From sequence record LC727697.1: 64,000 nt of DNA; one strand, 5' to 3'. A model generated the notes under the pieces. The model was given only the letters and a program-made list of their open reading frames with translations, was not told the origin of the DNA and did no database searches. Both the position numbers and the translations under genes were made by a program. Shown piece by piece: positions 13,274 to 44,649 of the stretch (positions are counted from its first letter, which is position 1; each line of letters opens with the position of its first letter).

Positions 13274-14644
13274 TTATTTTATATCTTTGCTAGAATCTGC
13301 TTCAAATTTATCTGTTCTTATTTCTAAAAATCTAGGAAGAAAAAGAGAATCAACACCTATTCGGTCTACGCTTTTAATTCTTTCATTATACATAACACTC
13401 ACTATGCTATGTTTCCATTTATTTTCAAAATTTGCTGTTGCATCATCGCGTTCGCTGTCAGTTAAACCAGATATGTTGACTATTACCTTACCGTCTGAGC
13501 TTTCACATATTAATGATCCAACTTTATGTTCTGTTTTAGTACCTACTGTTCCGTAATTAAACCCAGTTACAATTAATTCGCATACTTTTTCTGATTTATA
13601 TTTTAATACTAACTTACTTCGTTTATTTTCCCATATACTATCAGGACATTTTACCATTATGCCTTCTTCGTTTCTAGATATTGCTTCGTCGAAGAAGATT
13701 TTTACTTCCTCTTTGCTATAAAGGAGACGAGTTTCTGCTAACCTAATTTGCCCTATATTTCCTAAAATAGTATTATATATTTTACTTTCTATATAATCAT
13801 CATCTACTTGCAATTTATGTATTGCATTTGATAAACTTTCGAATCTACTAGAATAGGGTGTAGTGCATTTATGTTCATTAAAACATCTAAGAGGAATACA
13901 ATCCCAAAGAATTGCTCTTACATTCTTTATTTCATTATCTGTAATGGTATCACTTTGTGCTTTACTTATGATACCGTTTCCTGTCCGTCTGGGGAGTATA
14001 TTATTATTAGAATCTACAACTATTAATTCGCCATCAAAAACCATATCTTCGTCGAAATATTTAATTAGCGAAACAAATGCGTCATCTAAAATATCTTTAA
14101 AATCGTATGATTTACCCGATCTTCCATAAAATGAAACAATTCCGGATTTACTAACATGAATATTAATTCTAGTTCCGTCTGATTTTATCTGAGAATAATA
14201 TGGTAACTTGCATTTACTAAGAAGATTTTCTGTTGCAGGTTCTGCTAGCAAGCACGGATATTTAGGTACTAGATCCTTCCATATTTTATTAACTGTAGCA
14301 TCTTGTATCCCTGCGCGTAAATCCTTTCTAATAATCCGGATAATTACATTTGCATCGTCATCTGTTAAACTAGAAAGAATATATGTTAGATGCAATATTG
14401 CGGCATTACCTGTTTTTATTCTATCAGATAGAACAGATAATTCGGTTAGTGCTTGTTCTAAGGTAAGAATAGTATCTGTTCGCGTGAATTCTGGTATTTT
14501 CTTTATATAAAAGTTAATAAATGGATTTAATGCCAAATGTATTACTTTTTTTAATGTGTCATTATCCTTGTTTCTTTCTAGAATAGCTAATTTAGTAGTT
14601 CGTTTAGTAGTATTTCCGATTTCGTCTAAAATTGTACGAATCAT
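13274..14644 (-). CDS. lig: ATP-dependent DNA ligase (gp30-like)
   Basis: KSDG adenylation motif, FDGEL, EEGIMVK, LKYK, FLPRF. Confidence 0.95.
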   Translation of the reverse strand: MIRTILDEIGNTTKRTTKLAILERNKDNDTLKKVIHLALNPFINFYIKKIPEFTRTDTILTLEQALTELSVLSDRIKTGNAAILHLTYILSSLTDDDANVIIRIIRKDLRAGIQDATVNKIWKDLVPKYPCLLAEPATENLLSKCKLPYYSQIKSDGTRINIHVSKSGIVSFYGRSGKSYDFKDILDDAFVSLIKYFDEDMVFDGELIVVDSNNNILPRRTGNGIISKAQSDTITDNEIKNVRAILWDCIPLRCFNEHKCTTPYSSRFESLSNAIHKLQVDDDYIESKIYNTILGNIGQIRLAETRLLYSKEEVKIFFDEAISRNEEGIMVKCPDSIWENKRSKLVLKYKSEKVCELIVTGFNYGTVGTKTEHKVGSLICESSDGKVIVNISGLTDSERDDATANFENKWKHSIVSVMYNERIKSVDRIGVDSLFLPRFLEIRTDKFEADSSKDIK

Positions 14645-35715: not shown

Positions 35716-36342
35716 TTACTTTTTTGGTTTGGGACCGGGCTTTTTAGGTTTCTTATGTCTACGTTTTATTTCACCTAATGGAGTTACTACACCACTTATA
35801 GCAGCAGATGACATAAATGATGATTCATCTACAGCCGAATCATTAGATATACCGGCTAATTTTTTTATACGATCGATTTCTTTTGTTGCATCGTCTGCAG
35901 ACATGTTAGGAGTAACCGGAATTATACTATCGCCCGATTGAACAATCGAACCGCCGTCGGAAGTATTAATAGTAATAGTATTGCCTGCTATTGTTTTATT
36001 TTTTACTGTTACATCTTTAGGATTTCCGGATTCGGGATTGGCAATTGTAAGTTTATCACCAGTTTTTAATTTCTTAAAATTAGGAGTATCTTTTAAATTA
36101 GTTAAATCAGCAGCAGTAATTTTTTGTTGTTGACTTGGTGCAATTGAAGTATCCCTTACAGCAGAATAACTATTATCTAATGATTCTACTATATGTTTTA
36201 TAATGTCAGAATCTATGTGGTCTTGACTCTCAGTTAATGCCACAAAATCCTTAAATGAAATATATTTCATAAATGAACGTAATTCTAGTTCGTTTAAACC
36301 AAATTGTTCTTTTAATATTTGTTCTAATTTTATTTTATTCAT
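35716..36342 (-). CDS. Probable head-internal protein with basic tail
   Basis: LTE|S, IVE|S, VDE|S sites; C-terminal RRHKKPKKPGPKPKK. Confidence 0.6.
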   Translation of the reverse strand: MNKIKLEQILKEQFGLNELELRSFMKYISFKDFVALTESQDHIDSDIIKHIVESLDNSYSAVRDTSIAPSQQQKITAADLTNLKDTPNFKKLKTGDKLTIANPESGNPKDVTVKNKTIAGNTITINTSDGGSIVQSGDSIIPVTPNMSADDATKEIDRIKKLAGISNDSAVDESSFMSSAAISGVVTPLGEIKRRHKKPKKPGPKPKK

Positions 36343-36803
36343 ATTAATGAAGATCTCACAAATTCTATGTTTAAACCCGACCCATATGTTCTTATAATGG
36401 TACCTGACGGCAATATAATACCATCTAGTTCGTCTACTAATAACCCAGTTGTTCCGGGTGTACCATATGGGTTATAATTAGTAAACACTTCCGGCATTTC
36501 ACATGCGAATTTCCATACAAATCCTTCGCCAATTAATGTAGGGGCACCATATGCAGCTAAATTAGCAACAGGAACAGGATTATTCATTATAACTGGCATA
36601 GCTCTGAGACCTATACTTTGAAGAAGTATTTCGAAATTCTTTTGGCTTATATCATGTATATTATTTGTTACTAAGATGTTTATCCCTTCTGCGTTTTCGG
36701 GATCAGTATATGCCTTATCGGATTGCGCATATACTATAAAATAGGGTACATCGGCAGTTAGATTTTGTTGGGCACTACTAGTACCATGAATTTTTTGTGT
36801 CAT
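36339..36803 (-). CDS. Probable virion protein
   Basis: Late motif at 36833-36839; N-terminus MTQKIHG resembles that of the neighbouring gene. Confidence 0.65.
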   Translation of the reverse strand: MTQKIHGTSSAQQNLTADVPYFIVYAQSDKAYTDPENAEGINILVTNNIHDISQKNFEILLQSIGLRAMPVIMNNPVPVANLAAYGAPTLIGEGFVWKFACEMPEVFTNYNPYGTPGTTGLLVDELDGIILPSGTIIRTYGSGLNIEFVRSSLI

Positions 36804-36875
36804 TGCTATTACCTATACACATATTATATAGGTATTTATCGCATATGTAAAGTTTTTTCTACACACTAAGAACAA

Positions 36876-36898
36876 GAAAGGGCTTAATAAGCCCTTTC
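36876..36898 (-). terminator. Hairpin (11-bp arms, 1-nt loop)
   Basis: GAAAGGGCTTA-A-TAAGCCCTTTC. Confidence 0.7.
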
Positions 36899-36921
36899 AA
36901 GTTTTATTTAAGTTAACTATA

Positions 36922-37224
36922 TTAAACTACAGTAAACTTACCTACAGTAACAGTACCAGTCAAACCAGCAGCAGTTAATGCAGCTTCTAGGTCTGCCTTG
37001 GTCCAGCCGTCGCCAGCATTTTCTACAGCAACATGCATTACACCGGCATCGAATTCTATAATAACTAGAGTCGATTTTAAAGAAACAGTGCGATATACTT
37101 GTTCTGCTACGCTGTTAGGTAATTGCGGGTTTACGTCAACGCTAGCAACTTCGATTTTTAGATATTGCAGATGACCAGTTAAGTTAGTACCTGCTAAGAT
37201 GCCGCCATGTACTTTTTGTACCAT
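36922..37224 (-). CDS. Probable abundant virion (decoration-type) protein
   Basis: Own late motif (37278-37284), GGAG RBS and terminator; MVQKVHG start. Confidence 0.65.
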   Translation of the reverse strand: MVQKVHGGILAGTNLTGHLQYLKIEVASVDVNPQLPNSVAEQVYRTVSLKSTLVIIEFDAGVMHVAVENAGDGWTKADLEAALTAAGLTGTVTVGKFTVV

Positions 37225-37290
37225 GTTAAATATTCTCCATTAATTAATTTATACAAAGTTTCCTTTGTAGCTATAGTTATTTATCTTTTT

Positions 37291-37722
37291 CTATTGTTTA
37301 TTAGTTTTTTCCGGAAATTTTGTAGAGTATTCTGCCGGAATAAGAGTTATTTCATATGCATTTCCATCCGTTGTACTAACTAACGCAACTATGCCGTTGG
37401 CTGTAGATTTTATAGAAACTATATCTTTTATAAAATCACACTTTCCTATACTAGAAATAAGGTCTATTAATCTAGTAGGTCTACTTTCTTGCAAAGATAC
37501 CCTCTCTTCTAGACCGGGATACGGAAGTGACTTAATTACATTGCCGTGTTTATAGTAAAATTTTCCGCCAAAGTTGTACCCAAATATAACTTCGCCTTTG
37601 TGCTTTCTATGAAATTCTGCTTGAGTTCCATTGTTTTTTATGTCATCCCAGTCTACTTTTATATTAGTTGTATTGTCTATAGACGACATAATTTTGTCAA
37701 AACGTGATTGATAACTAGACAT
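37291..37722 (-). CDS. Hypothetical protein
   Basis: Start moved to ATG 37722 (MSSYQ) after AGGA, which removes the overlap. Confidence 0.65.
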   Translation of the reverse strand: MSSYQSRFDKIMSSIDNTTNIKVDWDDIKNNGTQAEFHRKHKGEVIFGYNFGGKFYYKHGNVIKSLPYPGLEERVSLQESRPTRLIDLISSIGKCDFIKDIVSIKSTANGIVALVSTTDGNAYEITLIPAEYSTKFPEKTNKQ

Positions 37723-37729
37723 AAAAATC

Positions 37730-38443
37730 CTAAATATATTTTTGTATTTCTGTAGGAAATACAAAACCGTCCACTATATTAGCATTTTTAAAATTATTTG
37801 CTATAGCAGAATACGTCGCTTCTGGATCTCCTTCATAATACGGAATAAAATTATATAAATCCTCTAAAGAATTTATATTAGCCCCTAGTACATATTTTAT
37901 TAAAGTAGGATGGGTAGTTTGCGATATAGTAACATCAGGTATAGATGTATCGTAATATCGATTTATTCGTACCATACCCCTAACAGGCGACCATATATAT
38001 CTAGAAACATAATCAGTAGTGGGATCCAAGAATTGTGTTTGGAAAATTCCAGAAATTGCTAAATTTCTATGAGATCCTTTATATGCTGAGTTTTCATCTC
38101 TAAAATAATATAATTTTAGCCAATTAACTTCCCCGTGCATAAAATCTACCTGATAATATTTAGTATCGGTGTGCTGATATTTAACAGAGAAAGATGGCTG
38201 TCCGCCATGTTGGATTACATTTTCTTGACCAAACGAAGATAATAATAAAGATTTAAAATCAGATAACGTTATATAATCTTTATCTATTGCTAAATCTATA
38301 TCACCTGTTACTGGAAATTTTCCAGTAGATCCTAAATAGTTATTCGATAAAGATAAACTAAGAATACTTTCTAACGACAACACTATATCTGGTAATACCG
38401 ATAAGCTCACCGGTTCTAATTGACCAAATGCATTTCCGCTCAT
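37730..38443 (-). CDS. Pol-beta-superfamily nucleotidyltransferase
   Basis: LGSTGK...GDIDL and third Asp in QVDFM. Confidence 0.75.
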   Translation of the reverse strand: MSGNAFGQLEPVSLSVLPDIVLSLESILSLSLSNNYLGSTGKFPVTGDIDLAIDKDYITLSDFKSLLLSSFGQENVIQHGGQPSFSVKYQHTDTKYYQVDFMHGEVNWLKLYYFRDENSAYKGSHRNLAISGIFQTQFLDPTTDYVSRYIWSPVRGMVRINRYYDTSIPDVTISQTTHPTLIKYVLGANINSLEDLYNFIPYYEGDPEATYSAIANNFKNANIVDGFVFPTEIQKYI

Positions 38444-38688
38444 TATTTTAATACGTCCGATATTGATAGATTTATTTTGCTCAAATCTGCATTATAACCT
38501 TGCGCAATGCGATCGCCTGTTTTCCAACGTTTTATTACAGATCGCTTCGCTGCGCCTGCGCCGAGGTCGCCTAATTTAATTCTCTTATTAATTATTTTAA
38601 TGACCTTTTGATATAAACTCTTATCGAAAGCTATATCCTTAGTAATATCGGATACAGGAGTTTTACTTTGTATTTCATCTAATCGCAT
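38443..38688 (-). CDS. Small basic hypothetical protein
   Basis: 81-aa ORF, TAATG coupling to the NTase gene. Confidence 0.65.
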   Translation of the reverse strand: MRLDEIQSKTPVSDITKDIAFDKSLYQKVIKIINKRIKLGDLGAGAAKRSVIKRWKTGDRIAQGYNADLSKINLSISDVLK

Positions 38689-39698
38689 TGTAAACCCTTA
38701 TTAATTATTGTTGCGTTCCTTGGCATTTGGGATTTCTTATAAACTTCTATCCGTCTGTTAGGCTCGGATTGACTAGTAAATAAGCTAGGATATCCAAATG
38801 TATCTACATCAATATATGTTAGTGTCTGGTCATTTGACCGTCGCCTAATCCTAATATATAATTCTTCCGAATTTATTAAATCAGAAACAGTTAAAAATTT
38901 ACCATTAAATGTAATTACATTATCTGTAACAGAATATTTTACATCCATGGGACCTATGTATAGATAATCTATGGGTCCTCCCATTTCTTTTGTACCTTTT
39001 ACTATCTTAGTAGCAACAGAAACTGGAATTTTATAAAATACATCCGCTGGGTCATTTTTAGAAAATTCGTGACCCTGTTTATATCCTTTGTTTTTAAAGT
39101 ATTCTATAGCACATTGCAACGGTTCGTTCATAAATCCGGGTGCTATTACGTTTATGCCTGCTAGGCCACCACCTGCTATAGACGGTGACGTAACACCTTT
39201 CATACTTATATTGTAGCACGCTCCGTTAACTGTATTAAGAACAACATCAGTGTACGGTTCTTTTCCTAAACTGTTTCTCCCACTATATTTATATGCATTT
39301 GTAACATTTTCTATTTTTAAATTAGCATTAATAGTGACAGGGCAACTACTTGTTTCATTATTTATTATAGATACAAAGGAATGCTCTTGCCTTTCTAATA
39401 ACTGTTTACTTCCAGGTTTTCCGCCAAATTCACTAGATTTTAATATTTCAGAAAGGGCTACAGTATCACTACCGGACGGGAATACAATTTTATTCCCATT
39501 TTTTAACGATTCTAGCGACTTCTCTAAACCCGAAGAACGTAAAAATTTAACAAATTTAGAATTAGCTACAGTAGACTTATATCCTAATTTTATTTTACTA
39601 CCATTTACTAGTGTAAAATACTCTCTATTTTCTATTTTATTAAGAAATATATCCCAATTATTTCTTTTTAATAGTTGAGTTTTACTTAAATGTGCCAT
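38679..39698 (-). CDS. Putative PD-(D/E)XK (restriction-like) endonuclease
   Basis: KEPYTDVVL...ISMKG pattern. Confidence 0.55.
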   Translation of the reverse strand: MAHLSKTQLLKRNNWDIFLNKIENREYFTLVNGSKIKLGYKSTVANSKFVKFLRSSGLEKSLESLKNGNKIVFPSGSDTVALSEILKSSEFGGKPGSKQLLERQEHSFVSIINNETSSCPVTINANLKIENVTNAYKYSGRNSLGKEPYTDVVLNTVNGACYNISMKGVTSPSIAGGGLAGINVIAPGFMNEPLQCAIEYFKNKGYKQGHEFSKNDPADVFYKIPVSVATKIVKGTKEMGGPIDYLYIGPMDVKYSVTDNVITFNGKFLTVSDLINSEELYIRIRRRSNDQTLTYIDVDTFGYPSLFTSQSEPNRRIEVYKKSQMPRNATIINKGLQCD

Positions 39699-41039
39699 CT
39701 ATATAGACGCCAACTTATTAAATAATTCTTTTACAGAACTAGAATTACTAACTATTTCTTTCGCATTATACAATCTATTCCTAAGATTAGAAATTGCTTC
39801 TAATGTTTTTGTATGAACAGAATCGTTATATCTAAATGTATATTTCATATACGATATATATACTACTTTTTCCATATCTTTATATCTGTTTAAATAAGAT
39901 TTAGTAAAAGTGTCTAGCTCGTTTATAGATTCAGATAGTATTCCTAATATTACATTTTTATCTATATTATTTAGAATTCTATCATCAATGTTTACTTGTT
40001 TGCGCCTAACTGTGCCTAGATTTTTATTGCCGAGGACTTTGCCTACTTTTATAAAAGTTTCACTAAATAGAGAAGTTTGTCCGGAGATATTATCATTCGT
40101 TGCCAATCTACAAAGTGCATTACTGTACATATGATAAAATTCATTTACTTCAGTAAATAAAGTCTTATCTACAATTTTTACTTGCATACTAGGTGTACGT
40201 ATTACATATCCTTCTACAAAAGTAGCACCGAAATTAGATTTTAAAGATATATCATTTAATATACGTTCTTTTAACTTAGAAGAAAACTCTTTTGTTTTGT
40301 TGAAAATATACTCTCTATTATCTTTAATGAGTTGTTTGCTATCTTCAGTAACTTTCTCGCTATTTAACCTACTGGTCACTTTAAGTTCAATTGATTTTAA
40401 ATTAGTCATCCCTTCTATTTTAGAAGGAGAACTAGCAAAGTCTACTATATCTTTTAAAATTGTATCTAATTGAAGATTAACATTAGATAGTTTTATACTT
40501 TCTAATTTAGAAAATTCCCATTCTGTTATACTCGTCTCTTCAGTAAAACCTACACCATTGTCATTTACCACAGGTATAGACAACTCAACACAATCTCTTA
40601 TGTTATTCATTGCTGTAGATACACAATCAAACGAATTGCCGTTTAAATTTCTTAAAAACACAATTCGATTAATGCCGTCATATTCAATTACGTTGGGTAT
40701 CTTCCCGTATAATACTTCAATTTCATATATATCTCCAACTGATAATCCACTTTTAATTAAAATGTCTTTATTTTGTTCTAACAGGGTGTGGGCTATTATA
40801 TGGTATACATTCTTAAATGTCTTTTCTAATGCAGAAATATTATAAATTCTAGTTCCACCCTTACCTTCCCTGGATGTAAATAGACCTATATTATCTAACC
40901 CCATACATAAATAGTAACCGTCTATTTTTTCTGTTATAGTAGCTTCATGCATGGAATTAACAAATGATACTAATTCTGTGAGTGTTAAGTTATCTAAATG
41001 TTTAATCCCTTTGTGTTTTTGTATTTCTGCAATATTCAT
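39699..41039 (-). CDS. ATP-dependent ligase-fold nucleotidyltransferase (RNA-ligase-like)
   Basis: Motif I TEKIDG, III EIEVL, IV EGYV, V VKIVDK. Confidence 0.7.
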   Translation of the reverse strand: MNIAEIQKHKGIKHLDNLTLTELVSFVNSMHEATITEKIDGYYLCMGLDNIGLFTSREGKGGTRIYNISALEKTFKNVYHIIAHTLLEQNKDILIKSGLSVGDIYEIEVLYGKIPNVIEYDGINRIVFLRNLNGNSFDCVSTAMNNIRDCVELSIPVVNDNGVGFTEETSITEWEFSKLESIKLSNVNLQLDTILKDIVDFASSPSKIEGMTNLKSIELKVTSRLNSEKVTEDSKQLIKDNREYIFNKTKEFSSKLKERILNDISLKSNFGATFVEGYVIRTPSMQVKIVDKTLFTEVNEFYHMYSNALCRLATNDNISGQTSLFSETFIKVGKVLGNKNLGTVRRKQVNIDDRILNNIDKNVILGILSESINELDTFTKSYLNRYKDMEKVVYISYMKYTFRYNDSVHTKTLEAISNLRNRLYNAKEIVSNSSSVKELFNKLASI

Positions 41040-41063
41040 ACTATTACCTTATTATTCGAAGTT

Positions 41064-41093
41064 ATAATAGCAAAAATCCCGTTATTGCGTCAA
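41064..41093 (-). promoter_or_regulatory. sigma70-type promoter with its -35 in a terminator loop
   Basis: TTGACG-N18-TATTAT. Confidence 0.7.
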
Positions 41094-41110
41094 GCAGTAA
41101 CGGGATTTTT
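41072..41110 (-). terminator. Intrinsic terminator
   Basis: AAAAATCCCGTTA / TAACGGGATTTTT arms. Confidence 0.85.
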
Positions 41111-41123
41111 ATAGAAAATAATA

Positions 41124-42323
41124 TTACCGATGTTTTCTATTTAACCGTTTAGATTCATTATCTGGATCGAGTTCATTGGTATCTCGGTGTTCAGTCTCAG
41201 AAGTTAATTGAGTAATAATATCTAAAACATCTTTGTCAGATAAAGTAGACTTTTCCATTATAGGAGATTCGATACTTTCAGGAAGAAGTTTATACAATCT
41301 AGATTGGTTTCTTTTTAGCCATGATAGTACGGGCGCTCGCAACCCTGCTTTCTTAATAAGAGATGCTACCCTAACCAATTCTTCGTTATAATCTTCTTCT
41401 TTTGTAATTCCTGCTTCTTTGAATATATTTTTGATTTCTCTATCACTAAATTTAAAATCTTTGAGAATTTGCTCTATATCTGCACTATCAGTAGAACCGT
41501 GATATTTATTCTTCCATACTCGTTTTAGTATATCTGCATCAACTTCGCCGCGACCGCCATTTAGACCTAATTGTCCCTTTAATACATCTAGCTTATTAGA
41601 TGCATTTTGTCCTACATTTGAATTGCCGATAGTGTCTGTGACTCTAGACCAAGCCCTCGATAAAAAATCCAATGGTCCTTCGTTTATAATAGATTCATTT
41701 GTAGAGGAAGTATCATCTAATTCTTTATTGACTTTATCTAATGCAAATGATAACATCGCAAATATTTCGTTTGCTACTGTTCCTTTTTTAGCAGATTCTG
41801 CGGCGGCAGATAAAGTAGATGATATAAATGCAGCGGCGGCAGAATTAGATAGCTGTCTCATTAAATAATCTACCATTTTATTAACATCTGCTGCTCGTCT
41901 TTGGCCAGATAATGCAGTCTTTATATCTACTTTATCTTTTATTGCCTGTTTATTAAGTTTACGCTGAGCTTCTTCGGCAGTTTCTTTATCATCTGACTGA
42001 ACTTCATGTGATATTTCAGTTTGTTCTGCCTGATCATATATTTGGTCTATTACGGGCTCTATTCGCTGTTTAACTTGATTGGCAGCATTTGATGCACTTC
42101 TGTTATCAGAGGTAAAGGATCCTAAAAATCCTTTACCAGATCCTCTTTTCTTAGAAGCAATGTTGAATATATTTACTATTTCTCCCGGAGAAATAAATGC
42201 CTCTATGATTGTAGTAAACTCCGAAATATCGTTACGCACAGATTCATAGAGACGGTTTAGATCTTTTAATTCCTGTTTAGATTTTTCTGTAGATAAAAAT
42301 CTTTTAAAAGTTTTATTAGTCAT
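41124..42323 (-). CDS. Probable head-internal helical protein
   Basis: 399 aa; INE|G, LPE|S, TNE|S sites; in late operon. Confidence 0.6.
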   Translation of the reverse strand: MTNKTFKRFLSTEKSKQELKDLNRLYESVRNDISEFTTIIEAFISPGEIVNIFNIASKKRGSGKGFLGSFTSDNRSASNAANQVKQRIEPVIDQIYDQAEQTEISHEVQSDDKETAEEAQRKLNKQAIKDKVDIKTALSGQRRAADVNKMVDYLMRQLSNSAAAAFISSTLSAAAESAKKGTVANEIFAMLSFALDKVNKELDDTSSTNESIINEGPLDFLSRAWSRVTDTIGNSNVGQNASNKLDVLKGQLGLNGGRGEVDADILKRVWKNKYHGSTDSADIEQILKDFKFSDREIKNIFKEAGITKEEDYNEELVRVASLIKKAGLRAPVLSWLKRNQSRLYKLLPESIESPIMEKSTLSDKDVLDIITQLTSETEHRDTNELDPDNESKRLNRKHR

Positions 42324-42927
42324 CGTTTTCTAATTCTCGTATTAGCGTAAGAAGTTGTCTTTTATTTAACACACCTGATGTTACAAATCTTTGAATACGC
42401 TCCATGTCTTCCTGTTGTTCTGGAGTCAATTCAAATGTATTAGCTTTAGTGTAGGAGTTAAGTTCGCCTGCTATGTCAGGTCTTGGCTCGGGAGCGCGGG
42501 TGGTCGCTGGTCGTTGTGTTTGTTTAGGTTGTTCAGGTTTTGTTTCTAGTTTTTGTGTATCTGGAATAATTTCAGGTATTTTTGTTTGGACTTTTAATTT
42601 ACCTTGAATTATATCTTGCACCTGCTCTTCCGGATATCCTAAACCTATAAGAAACTGCTTTACATATTCTGGATCAGTTTCTTTTTTTTCTGGACCTACT
42701 TTTGCATTATCTTCACTTGCTTTTTTAACAAATTGTTTAACGACTTCTTTAGTAGTACGTTTAGTAGGCGCTTTTTTATTAGGTTGTTTAGAAGCTATCT
42801 TCTTTTTAGAAGAAGATTCTGCATCAGATACATCCGGTGCTTCATGCATATAGCTGCTCTGTTGTGCTACCGGACTGTTTAACCCAATGAAATCGTCAAA
42901 TGTACTAGCTTCGAATACTTTTTTCAT
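42316..42927 (-). CDS. Probable head-internal protein
   Basis: MKKVFE|A start; Lys- and Pro-rich linkers. Confidence 0.6.
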   Translation of the reverse strand: MKKVFEASTFDDFIGLNSPVAQQSSYMHEAPDVSDAESSSKKKIASKQPNKKAPTKRTTKEVVKQFVKKASEDNAKVGPEKKETDPEYVKQFLIGLGYPEEQVQDIIQGKLKVQTKIPEIIPDTQKLETKPEQPKQTQRPATTRAPEPRPDIAGELNSYTKANTFELTPEQQEDMERIQRFVTSGVLNKRQLLTLIRELENDD

Positions 42928-42929
42928 TA

Positions 42930-43169
42930 TTATTCCTTAAGTTTTCTCACTGACTTACTAAATCGTTTAGCATCCTTGTATTTGATACTACTAAGTAATT
43001 TTTTTTCTAATTGCTCTGCGTCTGCATCAGAGTAATTAGATTCGATATACTCAATTAGATGAATTGCAGATTGTATTATATGTTCTGCTCTATATTCTAT
43101 CAATTCTTCTTTGCTCTTAGAAGGAACATAATTATTAAGTTCTTCTAAAATACTACGTCTAGTACTCAC
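42930..43169 (-). CDS. Small hypothetical protein
   Basis: GTG start with AGGGG RBS; late motif at 43191-43197. Confidence 0.7.
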   Translation of the reverse strand: MSTRRSILEELNNYVPSKSKEELIEYRAEHIIQSAIHLIEYIESNYSDADAEQLEKKLLSSIKYKDAKRFSKSVRKLKE

Positions 43170-43209: not shown

Positions 43210-44649
43210 TTATCTGTTGCCGCTAAGTAGATTACGAAGCCGGGCACTTTTTTCTACCATAGATTCTGCCGGTTTTTGTTCAATAACAGGTGTCTTTTGT
43301 ACATGAGTATCTTTATTATTAGGTGTGTCTAATGACCTATCTGCGCGGAGTTTATCAATAACACTCCTTGTATTCTCGGATAATGCGCTAGCTTGTTCTG
43401 GATCTAAATCAGATAATCTTAGTGTTCTTTGATCAAACGCAAGATCTACTTTCTGCCCGACGCCCGACGACGAACGTGTTTTAAGAAATTGAATTTGATA
43501 TCTTCCATTTTCTCTCATAGCTTGCGTTGTAAAAATAGCTATTACATTATCGGCAGTATTAATCTTAGAAATACCCCCAGAAATGTGTTCATGTCCAAAA
43601 TCTACAGATTCGTGTGAATTTCTGTTTAACTGCGATGCAGTGACTAATAGAATTTGAAGCTCAACTGCTAAGTTCCTTAATTCTTCAGAAACGTATTTGT
43701 CTTTAACAAACAGATCCGATGGACTTACCTTTTTACTTATAGGCATACACAAATCCAAATAGTCTAACATTATTGCATCTACTTTTAATCCTGTTTGAAT
43801 TTCGTATTCTTTTATATAAGAACGTATATCGTTGGCTGTACAACCATTGGGTAATTGCTTAATTCGAAGGGAGCCCTTAGTTTTCTTTTTAGATTCAATA
43901 ACTTTTATAGCTACGTCATCTACCCTGCGTAAAACTTCTTTTGTATCAATACCTGTGTTCATAGAATCTATGCGCATAGAACATAAGTTTTCGCTCAATT
44001 CTAAACTAAGGTAAACTACGTTAAGTCCTGCTATAGCCCAATTTAACCCTATATTTTGTAGGAATATAGATTTGCCAGCGCCCGATTGTCCTGCAAAAAT
44101 ATTTAGAGCGCCGCGCTCAAAACCACCGTACAGTTTTGCATCTAAATCTTTCATGCCAGTTGACACTAACGATTTTCTGTCTTTAATGGCATTAAGTCTA
44201 GACAGTGGATCTCCAAAATAATCAGTACCTAAATCTTTAACTAATGCAATAGAAACTGCATTCTTAACTTTTTGTTCAACTTCTCCGTACCGACCGGTAA
44301 CTAATAAATCAGGAGACTCTAATATCACATTCTCTAGTTGTTTATGCCTAGCAAATGTTTCGTATTCTTCTAAAAACCAATTTTTGTGGCTATCATGTAT
44401 GTTATCTAATAACTCAAATGATTTTCCTGTTATGGCAGATACTTGTTCTACAGTAGGAAGAGTACTATGTTTATCTGCATGTTCATTTAGAAAATCTATA
44501 ACTTTTTGGTTAATCTTATCCGAATAGTGGTCTCGTTGTATTATAGATCGGCATCTAATAAACAATTCTGGGTCAGTTAAGAAAAATTTTATAAACAAAT
44601 CTTCTACGCCAGTATTATAATCCTTTACTACGTCTTTGTTTTGTTTCAC
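43210..44649 (-). CDS. gp41: Replicative helicase gp41/DnaB-like
   Basis: GQSGAGKS, LSLELSE, LDYLDL, ASQLNR, KTRSS. Confidence 0.95.
   Translation of the reverse strand: MKQNKDVVKDYNTGVEDLFIKFFLTDPELFIRCRSIIQRDHYSDKINQKVIDFLNEHADKHSTLPTVEQVSAITGKSFELLDNIHDSHKNWFLEEYETFARHKQLENVILESPDLLVTGRYGEVEQKVKNAVSIALVKDLGTDYFGDPLSRLNAIKDRKSLVSTGMKDLDAKLYGGFERGALNIFAGQSGAGKSIFLQNIGLNWAIAGLNVVYLSLELSENLCSMRIDSMNTGIDTKEVLRRVDDVAIKVIESKKKTKGSLRIKQLPNGCTANDIRSYIKEYEIQTGLKVDAIMLDYLDLCMPISKKVSPSDLFVKDKYVSEELRNLAVELQILLVTASQLNRNSHESVDFGHEHISGGISKINTADNVIAIFTTQAMRENGRYQIQFLKTRSSSGVGQKVDLAFDQRTLRLSDLDPEQASALSENTRSVIDKLRADRSLDTPNNKDTHVQKTPVIEQKPAESMVEKSARLRNLLSGNR

Follow-up and report, generated by a model that had tools for sequence, protein, structure and literature searches.

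Within a 64,000-nucleotide stretch of sequence record LC727697.1 (hereafter the window), a compact gene cluster at positions 37,291 to 41,110 encodes three apparently intact enzymes that are genetically linked: a ligase-fold protein (g446), a polymerase-beta (Pol-beta) nucleotidyltransferase (NTase; g237) and a PD-(D/E)XK nuclease (g339). A small basic partner protein (g81) is linked with them. Our leading, still tentative, reading is that this unit forms a module, specific to viruses, for processing and joining the ends of nucleic acids. It would be a divergent counterpart of the Rnl-RlaP pairs and would most likely act on RNA, namely tRNA or other translation RNA damaged by host ribotoxins. 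Judged by sequence identity, the window comes from a PA5oct-like Pseudomonas jumbo phage: over bases 36500-42500 it matches Pseudomonas phage sp. 30-2 at 100% identity and ten further PA5oct-like jumbo phages, PA5oct, MIJ3, Paride and Callisto among them, at 98.6-99.7%. A first-pass annotation of this DNA had described five abutting genes and proposed a cut-and-repair system. The places, strand and tight packing of the five open reading frames (ORFs) are borne out, with gaps or overlaps of -10 to +7 nucleotides (nt), and cut-and-repair is the best-supported reading. The three enzyme assignments hold, and the enzymes are linked by fusions and adjacency. The five genes correspond to PA5oct gp228-232 (EST35_0228 to EST35_0232) and are listed here in order of transcription, with a probable sixth:

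39699-41039, minus strand: g446 (gp228), ligase-fold protein; directly adjoins g339
38679-39698, minus strand: g339 (gp229), predicted nuclease; 10-nt overlap with g81
38443-38688, minus strand: g81 (gp230), small basic protein; 1-nt overlap with g237
37730-38443, minus strand: g237 (gp231), predicted NTase; 7-nt gap to g143
37291-37722, minus strand: g143 (gp232), ATG start as in the PA5oct annotation; 66-nt gap to g100
36922-37224, minus strand: g100 (gp233), probable sixth gene with a mass-spectrometry tag; no terminator between g143 and g100

Throughout eleven PA5oct-like genomes, the genes of the unit are labelled 'hypothetical' or 'structural'. In the PA5oct record, EST35_0228 and 0229 are 'hypothetical', while 0230-0232 (g81, g237 and g143) are called 'structural protein' from peptides detected in particle preparations with tandem mass spectrometry after electrospray ionization (ESI-MS/MS). 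The same tag stands on ribonucleotide reductase, thymidylate synthase, DNA ligase, FtsH and ClpP. Because it marks so many enzymes, it establishes no structural role for gp230-232, and a structural cluster, as the labels would have it, was dismissed. Gene numbering also differs between sources: 'gp230' of preprint 10.1101/2025.03.31.646159 is a 6-pyruvoyl-tetrahydropterin synthase, which is EST35_0254 in MK797984, where EST35_0230 is the 81-residue g81.

Searches with the single proteins of the unit against Pfam, PHROGs, NCBIfam, PADLOC and PDB sequences gave nothing useful, except for a match of g339 to phrog_13937 (1e-5), a family without an assigned function. No unit gene matched a curated family; sub-threshold DUF6267 or Pol-beta matches were seen in three relatives. 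Profile searches of the PDB with alignments of g446, g339, the NTase and a C-terminal extension of g446 homologues, termed domain X below, were all non-significant.

The ligase-fold assignment of the 446-residue protein, which the first-pass annotation had drawn from a KxDG motif, is upheld by conservation and by fold. Relatives of g446 comprised 12 proteins found by a word-index search and 111 loci in IMG/VR, 69 of the latter being non-identical. Motif I reads E37-K38-I-D40-G41, with its K, D and G present in all 82 distinct members. Motifs III, IV and V, whose positions were assigned by order, spacing and alignment to DUF6267, are represented by E108, E276-G277 and K288, and position 292 is K or R in every member (K292 in g446). 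The complete set of residues with 100% conservation is E37, K38, D40, G41, E108, P115, N116, Y120, K257, E276, G277, K288 and D291, with R57 conserved in 81 of the 82. That the ligase motifs, IV and V included, are fully conserved argues for a genuine end-joining chemistry.

The AlphaFold2 model of g446 (mean predicted local distance difference test score, pLDDT, 84) supports this assignment. Foldseek against the PDB ranked T4 Rnl2 first (E = 1.2e-4, probability 0.99), followed by T4 Rnl1, archaeal Rnl3 and fungal Trl1 ligase domains; T. brucei REL1 was also among the matches (rank 29), and DNA ligases ranked lower. After motif V (past residue 292) the model consists of helices and one hairpin with no sign of an OB fold, and no OB match was found in Pfam. 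On this model, g446 is predicted to be an ATP-dependent ligase-fold nucleotidyltransferase of the RNA-ligase type with intact catalytic residues. It appears to share with the T4 Rnl2/Rnl family (PF09414) the nucleotidyltransferase fold, motifs I, III, IV and V and a helical C-terminal region. However, g446 carries an insertion of ~140 residues between motifs III and IV, and it has no match to PF09414 at E <= 0.1; only its relatives score, at a sub-threshold 18-22 bits against a cut-off of 27.

A named relative is DUF6267 (PF19782), an uncharacterised domain homologous to the catalytic region of g446. The Pfam model of DUF6267 does not match g446 itself and reaches 22 bits in one relative against a cut-off of 27. 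By hhalign, the two families align over 274 columns (probability 97.3%, E = 1.7e-11), and their KxDG and EG motifs line up. The g446 family would accordingly be a sister of DUF6267 rather than a member of it, and DUF6267 is itself a ligase-fold domain. Both are fused to the same NTase family and both follow replication genes, primase and DnaB in the case of DUF6267, but the fusion order differs (NTase-DUF6267 versus g446-NTase). The g446 family is essentially viral: among 185,579 bacterial and archaeal species, each represented by one genome, cellular relatives were confined to three short metagenome-bin contigs.

For the 339-residue protein, an earlier PD-(D/E)XK-like label is likewise supported, with a restriction-type fold. 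Twenty g339 homologues have a common core (residues 100-339) and a variable N-terminal domain (~1-95). Invariant in the core of all 20 are E102-R-Q-E105, K137, G145, E147, Y149, D151, S165, K167 and G168, together with a GGPIDY-x-Y-x-GPM block and an R-x-R-x-R block. The AlphaFold2 model (pLDDT 90) matched MspI, HhaI and HinP1I best in the PDB (probability ~0.8), then MGME1, SwaI, Hjc and RecU. Against the viral models of BFVD, the matches were CviJI, Nt.CviQII and other chlorovirus endonucleases (probability 1.00, E = 1e-8 to 1e-10, template-modelling score, TM, ~0.45), as well as uncharacterised proteins of Stenotrophomonas phages and cyanophages. The putative catalytic set consists of the invariant E105 on the preceding helix, D151 and K167, with an invariant S165 at the usual second acidic position. 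These features suggest, on the modelled fold, a restriction-type PD-(D/E)XK enzyme with a variant catalytic element.

Compared with CviJI/Nt.CviQII and MspI/HinP1I/HhaI, g339 has the same order of elements: the first helix bears an acidic residue, a D follows and a residue-x-K comes last. It differs in the serine, in the extra N-terminal domain and in the lack of detected sequence-level similarity. Its genomic ties are also different, being to the NTase rather than to restriction-modification, with no methyltransferase partner seen.

The third enzyme, g237, had been called a Pol-beta NTase, and its motif triad (G-S, DxD and a third D) carries that assignment. A word-index search returned only g237 itself, whereas an exhaustive HMMER search recovered 215 cluster representatives at E <= 1e-3 (clusters at 50% identity). 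Across 90 standalone members, G38, D48, D50, Q98 and D100 never vary, and S39, G41, K42 and G47 hardly do. G38-S39, D48-x-D50 and the third acidic residue D100 form the Pol-beta superfamily signature. No Pfam family covers g237. In the PDB, the NTase profile matched by sequence nothing but the catalytic motif of Pol lambda, and that without significance (E = 1.2-1.5); individual members give non-significant matches to Polbeta, pol-B palm and AbiEii models, single ones with weak DNA_pol_B palm/thumb matches. From its sequence signature, g237 is best described as a Pol-beta-superfamily nucleotidyltransferase of an undescribed family.

The smallest member of the unit, the 81-residue protein, is basic as first described (isoelectric point 10.0). 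An iterative search with g81 found matches in seven other loci (L012, L081, L022, L065, L101, L005 and L021) and at the N-terminus of the NTase in L019. It lies between the ligase and the NTase in six other loci, and g81 is probably a small basic partner protein of these two enzymes.

The strongest evidence that these genes form one system comes from gene fusions. Ligase and NTase are fused in seven representatives (P0007, P0009, P0115, P0145, P0161, P0167 and P0172). The NTase is fused to DUF6267 in nine of 52 multidomain NTase members and to a PF09414-like domain in P0060. In P0024, the catalytic half of the NTase is joined to the g339 core, and the upstream neighbour of this fusion has a PF09414-like motif I region. 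Adjacency recurs in unrelated phages as well: in Xanthomonas phages BUDD and X1, a g339 homologue comes immediately after an NTase homologue. NTase neighbourhoods were sampled via ligase loci and a few contig look-ups. Among the 69 non-identical IMG/VR ligase loci, an NTase adjoins the ligase in 13 and is fused to it in two, 35 have an unrelated C-terminal extension on the ligase instead, and none has a g339 homologue.

While these data bear out the linkage of the enzymes, they do not agree with the earlier view that all five genes make up one conserved system. The full five-gene set occurs only in the PA5oct lineage and in L012, a distant metagenomic relative with the order kept at 38-57% identity. 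The conserved core appears to be ligase-g81-NTase, with g339 a lineage-specific addition in PA5oct-like phages. Homologues of g143 were found only in L012, with one distant ORF in L004, and g143 is best regarded as a lineage-specific ORF that is not conserved with the module.

The first-pass annotation knew of no characterised system with this make-up. A close parallel has in fact been described: RNA ligases of jumbo phages are accompanied by RlaP NTases (PMC7824862), and RlaP adds one or two nucleoside monophosphates to the 3' ends of damaged RNA (PMC12776372). As in the Rnl-RlaP pair, an ATP-dependent RNA-ligase-fold enzyme is paired here, genetically and by fusion, with a Pol-beta-superfamily NTase, and the predicted logic, in which lost 3' nucleotides are restored before sealing, would be the same (PMC7824862, PMC12776372). 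The g237 family resembles RlaP further in being tied to RNA-ligase-fold genes through the g446-like, DUF6267 and PF09414 fusions and through adjacency. In contrast, the module ligase comes from a separate, virus-restricted family, the module has an extra partner (g81) and, in the PA5oct lineage, a restriction-type nuclease, and it lacks a kinase or phosphatase and has a fixed place after the replicative helicase. It falls below the thresholds of PF10127, PF09414 and DUF6267, and would be a variant analogous to the known repair pairs that is itself uncharacterised. T4-type tRNA repair (Pnkp plus Rnl1) differs in its end-healing 5'-kinase/3'-phosphatase, for which no match lies beside g446.

A nuclease, a nucleotidyltransferase and a ligase also work together, as a standard scheme, in base-excision repair, in end joining and in the RNA editing of kinetoplastids, where the same three chemistries are united in one functional unit. 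Homology to these systems is at the superfamily level only; in the present case the proteins are small and come from a phage, and neither guide RNA nor scaffold parts were identified.

What the analysis shows comprises the folds, catalytic residues that are intact, fusions between genes and the synteny; the substrate, the sequence of reactions and the role in the phage's biology are what we infer. The metal-dependent nuclease g339 would make or re-cut a break, leaving a 3'-OH and a 5'-phosphate. The NTase g237 would then add one or a few nucleotides to the 3'-OH. Finally, g446 would adenylylate itself on K38, move the AMP to the 5'-phosphate and seal the break. RNA is favored as the substrate because of the type of ligase, the pairing of NTase and ligase, and the literature precedent (PMC7824862, PMC12776372). 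A separate canonical DNA ligase in the phage already covers the sealing of DNA nicks, which also speaks for RNA. A further point comes from a JGI contig bearing P0031, where a g339 homologue is clustered with genes for an AAA_33 kinase, a metallophosphoesterase, a 417-residue protein without an assigned function and a PolyA_pol-domain protein (PolyA_pol/CCA-type) of 1857 residues, a make-up that looks like that of RNA repair.

Several observations weigh against this reading. The fold of g339 matches DNA endonucleases (CviJI, Nt.CviQII, MspI and HinP1I), not RNases. The Foldseek TM-scores of g446 are low (0.2-0.3), which fits its insertion between motifs III and IV, and identity in the alignments to Rnl-family structures is 9-13%. 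No match to RlaP (PF10127) was found in g237 or in 97 NTase members scanned (52 multidomain at E <= 1e-3 and 45 standalone at E <= 0.1). The NTase is present in just 15 of the 69 IMG/VR loci, and 35 carry C-terminal domain X instead. No tRNA or Rfam RNA was found in or near the unit, and the 12 tRNA genes of PA5oct lie ~115 kb away. The annotation of the PA5oct record contains no RNA ligase, polynucleotide kinase, RtcB or CCA enzyme, and no unit gene matches a kinase or phosphatase family, the only candidate in that annotation being a distant metallophosphoesterase, gp248. Classical healing of breaks whose ends are a 2',3'-cyclic phosphate and a 5'-OH would therefore be missing. Re-cutting of damaged ends by the nuclease could, speculatively, square this absence with RNA repair. 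The ligase gene, lastly, behaves as part of the core gene set that a large clade of jumbo phages inherits vertically, unlike sporadic accessory RNA-repair genes.

The genomic neighborhood brings in DNA as the other candidate substrate. The unit had been placed inside a late head-gene block, but its neighbors are primase, DnaB helicase, exonuclease and ribonucleotide reductase, and the portal and major head genes lie ~65 kb off in PA5oct. Two genes outside the module matter most here:

43210-44649, minus strand: DnaB-like replicative helicase (PF03796, 3e-23), the upstream landmark of the ligase gene
13274-14644, minus strand: canonical ATP-dependent DNA ligase (PA5oct gp267; PF01068, 8e-24, with N-terminal DNA-binding and OB domains)

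A DnaB homologue lies upstream of the ligase on the same strand in 64 of the 69 IMG/VR loci, within 2 kb in 60, and a primase is usually there too. The DnaB-then-ligase order is also found in Sinorhizobium phage Phosso, Ralstonia phage RsoM2USA, L004, L005, L099, L100, L101 and the NTase-DUF6267 fusion loci, two Logan contigs being among these. In RsoM2USA, gene 435 (L002:10028-10696) encodes a different nuclease (PDDEXK_1, 8e-8) two genes after the g446 homologue, a second and independent ligase-nuclease neighborhood. Together with the relatives of the nuclease and the absence of kinase/phosphatase healing enzymes, this helicase and primase neighborhood favors a DNA substrate. The module could then be a replication- or repair-linked set that nicks, fills or extends and seals, like base-excision repair or end joining. 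In such a scheme, g339 would nick or cut DNA in the manner of the sequence-specific cutters and nickases that its fold resembles, g237 would be a pared-down polymerase of Pol X type or a terminal transferase, and sealing, possibly at RNA-DNA junctions, would fall to g446. The virus-restricted, core-like character of the family, the g339-like genes near primase genes in Synechococcus phage Sf-FS3 and BUDD, and the Pol lambda and DNA_pol_B palm/thumb matches of the NTase family fit this scheme.

Nevertheless, we consider a DNA module less probable than one acting on RNA. The phage has two ligase-fold enzymes, g446 and gp267, and the latter is a complete canonical DNA ligase. Profile comparison of gp267 with the g446 family detected no relation, and a simple reading of g446 as the replicative DNA ligase was rejected on these two grounds. 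The fold matches of g446 favor RNA ligases, its model lacks the OB domain typical of DNA ligases, and the Pol X matches of the NTase are non-significant (E > 1). Adjacency to DnaB may merely reflect a gene order kept within one large clade; synteny alone cannot tell a replication link from conserved gene order.

A related proposal, which we regard as unlikely, treats the ligase, with g81 and the NTase or with domain X, as a hitherto unrecognised core accessory of the replication machinery of this jumbo-phage clade. Its substrates would be DNA ends or RNA-DNA ends, as in primer or nick processing or in untemplated nucleotide addition and resealing at enzyme-made nicks, rather than as a facultative anti-ribotoxin kit. 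If this were so, the added site-specific nuclease would make the PA5oct-like module a programmed cut-extend-reseal system on a genome.

Domain X bears on the composition of the module outside the PA5oct lineage. It is a C-terminal extension of ~290 to 770 residues on about half of the IMG/VR g446 homologues (within L019-L098, for example L055:8399-9289 and L038:7001-10759; alignment A7), with conserved positions M-S-x-x-N-x-W-G plus H/S. It matched nothing in Pfam, the PDB or the NTase and g339 profiles. That the extension is a degenerate NTase or g339 was rejected (hhalign probability 0.2%). Since loci with domain X lack the NTase, domain X may replace it there.

The restricted distribution of g339 raises the question of whether it belongs to the system at all. 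It could be an independent restriction-like or nicking endonuclease directed against unmodified host DNA, with phage DNA guarded by guanine modification, or a selfish insertion, the system then being ligase-g81-NTase only. The absence of g339 from all IMG/VR ligase loci agrees with this, as do the unrelated inserts that hold its slot elsewhere (a PcfJ-like gene in L004, small ORFs in L005) and its structural relatives, which include chlorovirus restriction and nicking enzymes. PA5oct DNA is resistant to several restriction enzymes (10.1101/2025.03.31.646159), and deazaguanine-pathway genes are present in the PA5oct record. Homologues of g339 also occur without ligase or NTase: one at L006:8001-9089 (and L007), on a jumbo-phage contig, lies among ClpS/HSP20, RNase_T exonuclease and ClpP genes, roughly where the PA5oct DNA ligase gp267 stands in the conserved gene order. 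Set against these points are the NTase-g339 fusion P0024 beside a ligase-like gene, the NTase adjoining a g339-like gene in BUDD and X1, and the overlapping stop and start codons inside the operon, which amount to translational coupling. An independent g339 seems to us improbable on balance, and it overlaps with both the RNA and the DNA readings.

The first-pass annotation had also offered a nucleotide-signal or protein-modification counter-defence system, for which no direct support was gained. Under this proposal, the NTase would act on small nucleotides (making, capping or destroying immune signals) or on proteins, and the ligase-like protein would adenylylate a target other than nucleic acid. 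Some members of the NTase family have fusions compatible with such a role. One protein (P0160) joins the NTase to a Thoeris inhibitor domain (Tad3) and DUF5661, and four others, P0082, P0097 and P0174 among them, join it to cytidylyltransferase-like domains. A cytidylyltransferase-like gene also neighbors the g339 homologues of BUDD and Sf-FS3 (L103:6852-7340; L102:5735-7024), and g81, g237 and g143 were recovered from PA5oct particle preparations. 

Set beside these points, all ligase motifs, including IV and V, are fully conserved, which points to end joining, and no unit gene matches a PADLOC or anti-defence family. The polyvalent fusions may only reflect common packaging, and the mass-spectrometry tags, found also on ribonucleotide reductase, thymidylate synthase and DNA ligase, are weak evidence for a place in the virion. 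A counter-defence role of this kind is, in our view, very improbable, and end processing and joining, with RNA as the preferred substrate, is retained as the leading reading.

Three unannotated proteins gain fold-level, testable identities from this analysis, and DUF6267 is revealed as a ligase fold. The g237 family adds a predicted new Pol-beta NTase family of ~215 clusters (50% identity) in which fusion to ligase-fold domains is habitual; it parallels RlaP and is not part of it. PA5oct and Paride relatives are candidates for phage therapy; an end-repair module could account for tolerance of RNA- or DNA-breaking host nucleases. In more than 60 viral contigs the ligase gene strictly follows the replicative helicase, a position that is unexpected for a facultative RNA-repair gene and raises the question of RNA versus DNA. 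Also unexpected are the virus-only range, the g81 partner, the NTase-nuclease fusion and the apparent replacement of the NTase by domain X in half of the family.

The boundaries of the transcription unit differ from those first drawn. The relevant signals are the following:

41066-41111, minus strand: terminator-like hairpin closing the upstream g399 gene, 14-bp stem then U-run (-20.9 kcal/mol, z = -7.4; none of 200 shuffled sequences reached this stability)
41064-41093, minus strand: candidate sigma-70-type promoter, TTGACG, 18 nt, TATTAT, with TG upstream of the -10 box (10/12 matches)
36876-36898, minus strand: intrinsic terminator closing the unit, 10-bp stem with 5 GC pairs and a T-run (-17.1 kcal/mol, z = -5.3)

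The 84-nt spacer 5' of g446 holds both the hairpin and the promoter candidate, whose -35 box (TTGACG) sits in the hairpin loop. PA5oct, which has been placed in jumbo-phage group 2.2 of Iyer et al. (PMC10761892), relies on host RNA polymerase for transcription and has a reported promoter motif, TTGAC/TATAATA (PMC7318152). The claim that the unit has its own sigma70 promoter is partly sustained: position and fit to the reported motif support the candidate, but scan statistics do not, the scan overall being at chance level (50 sites versus 46 +/- 7 expected). A terminator had been thought to insulate the five-gene set. Between g143 and g100 there is just a weak hairpin (-6.7 kcal/mol, z = -1.9). 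Because the first strong terminator lies after g100 and none follows g143, the transcription unit probably comprises six genes, g446 through g100. At its downstream end the five-gene boundary is accordingly given up: g143 lacks conservation with the other genes, and co-transcription probably extends to g100.

The sixth gene, g100, is a paralogue of g154 (36339-36803, minus strand), with an N-terminus common to both. Both proteins were seen by mass spectrometry in PA5oct, and related loci, ~20 in all, hold one to three members of their family downstream of the module; g100 and g154 are probably virion proteins. A 142-residue ORF at 39250-39678 on the plus strand, antisense within g339, is of low complexity, hydrophobic and unannotated in every relative, and is probably spurious. 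Directly after DnaB, a 79-residue protein, g79 (42930-43169, minus strand), is kept in 27 related loci, including that of Phosso (38% identity), and is likely a helicase-associated small protein.

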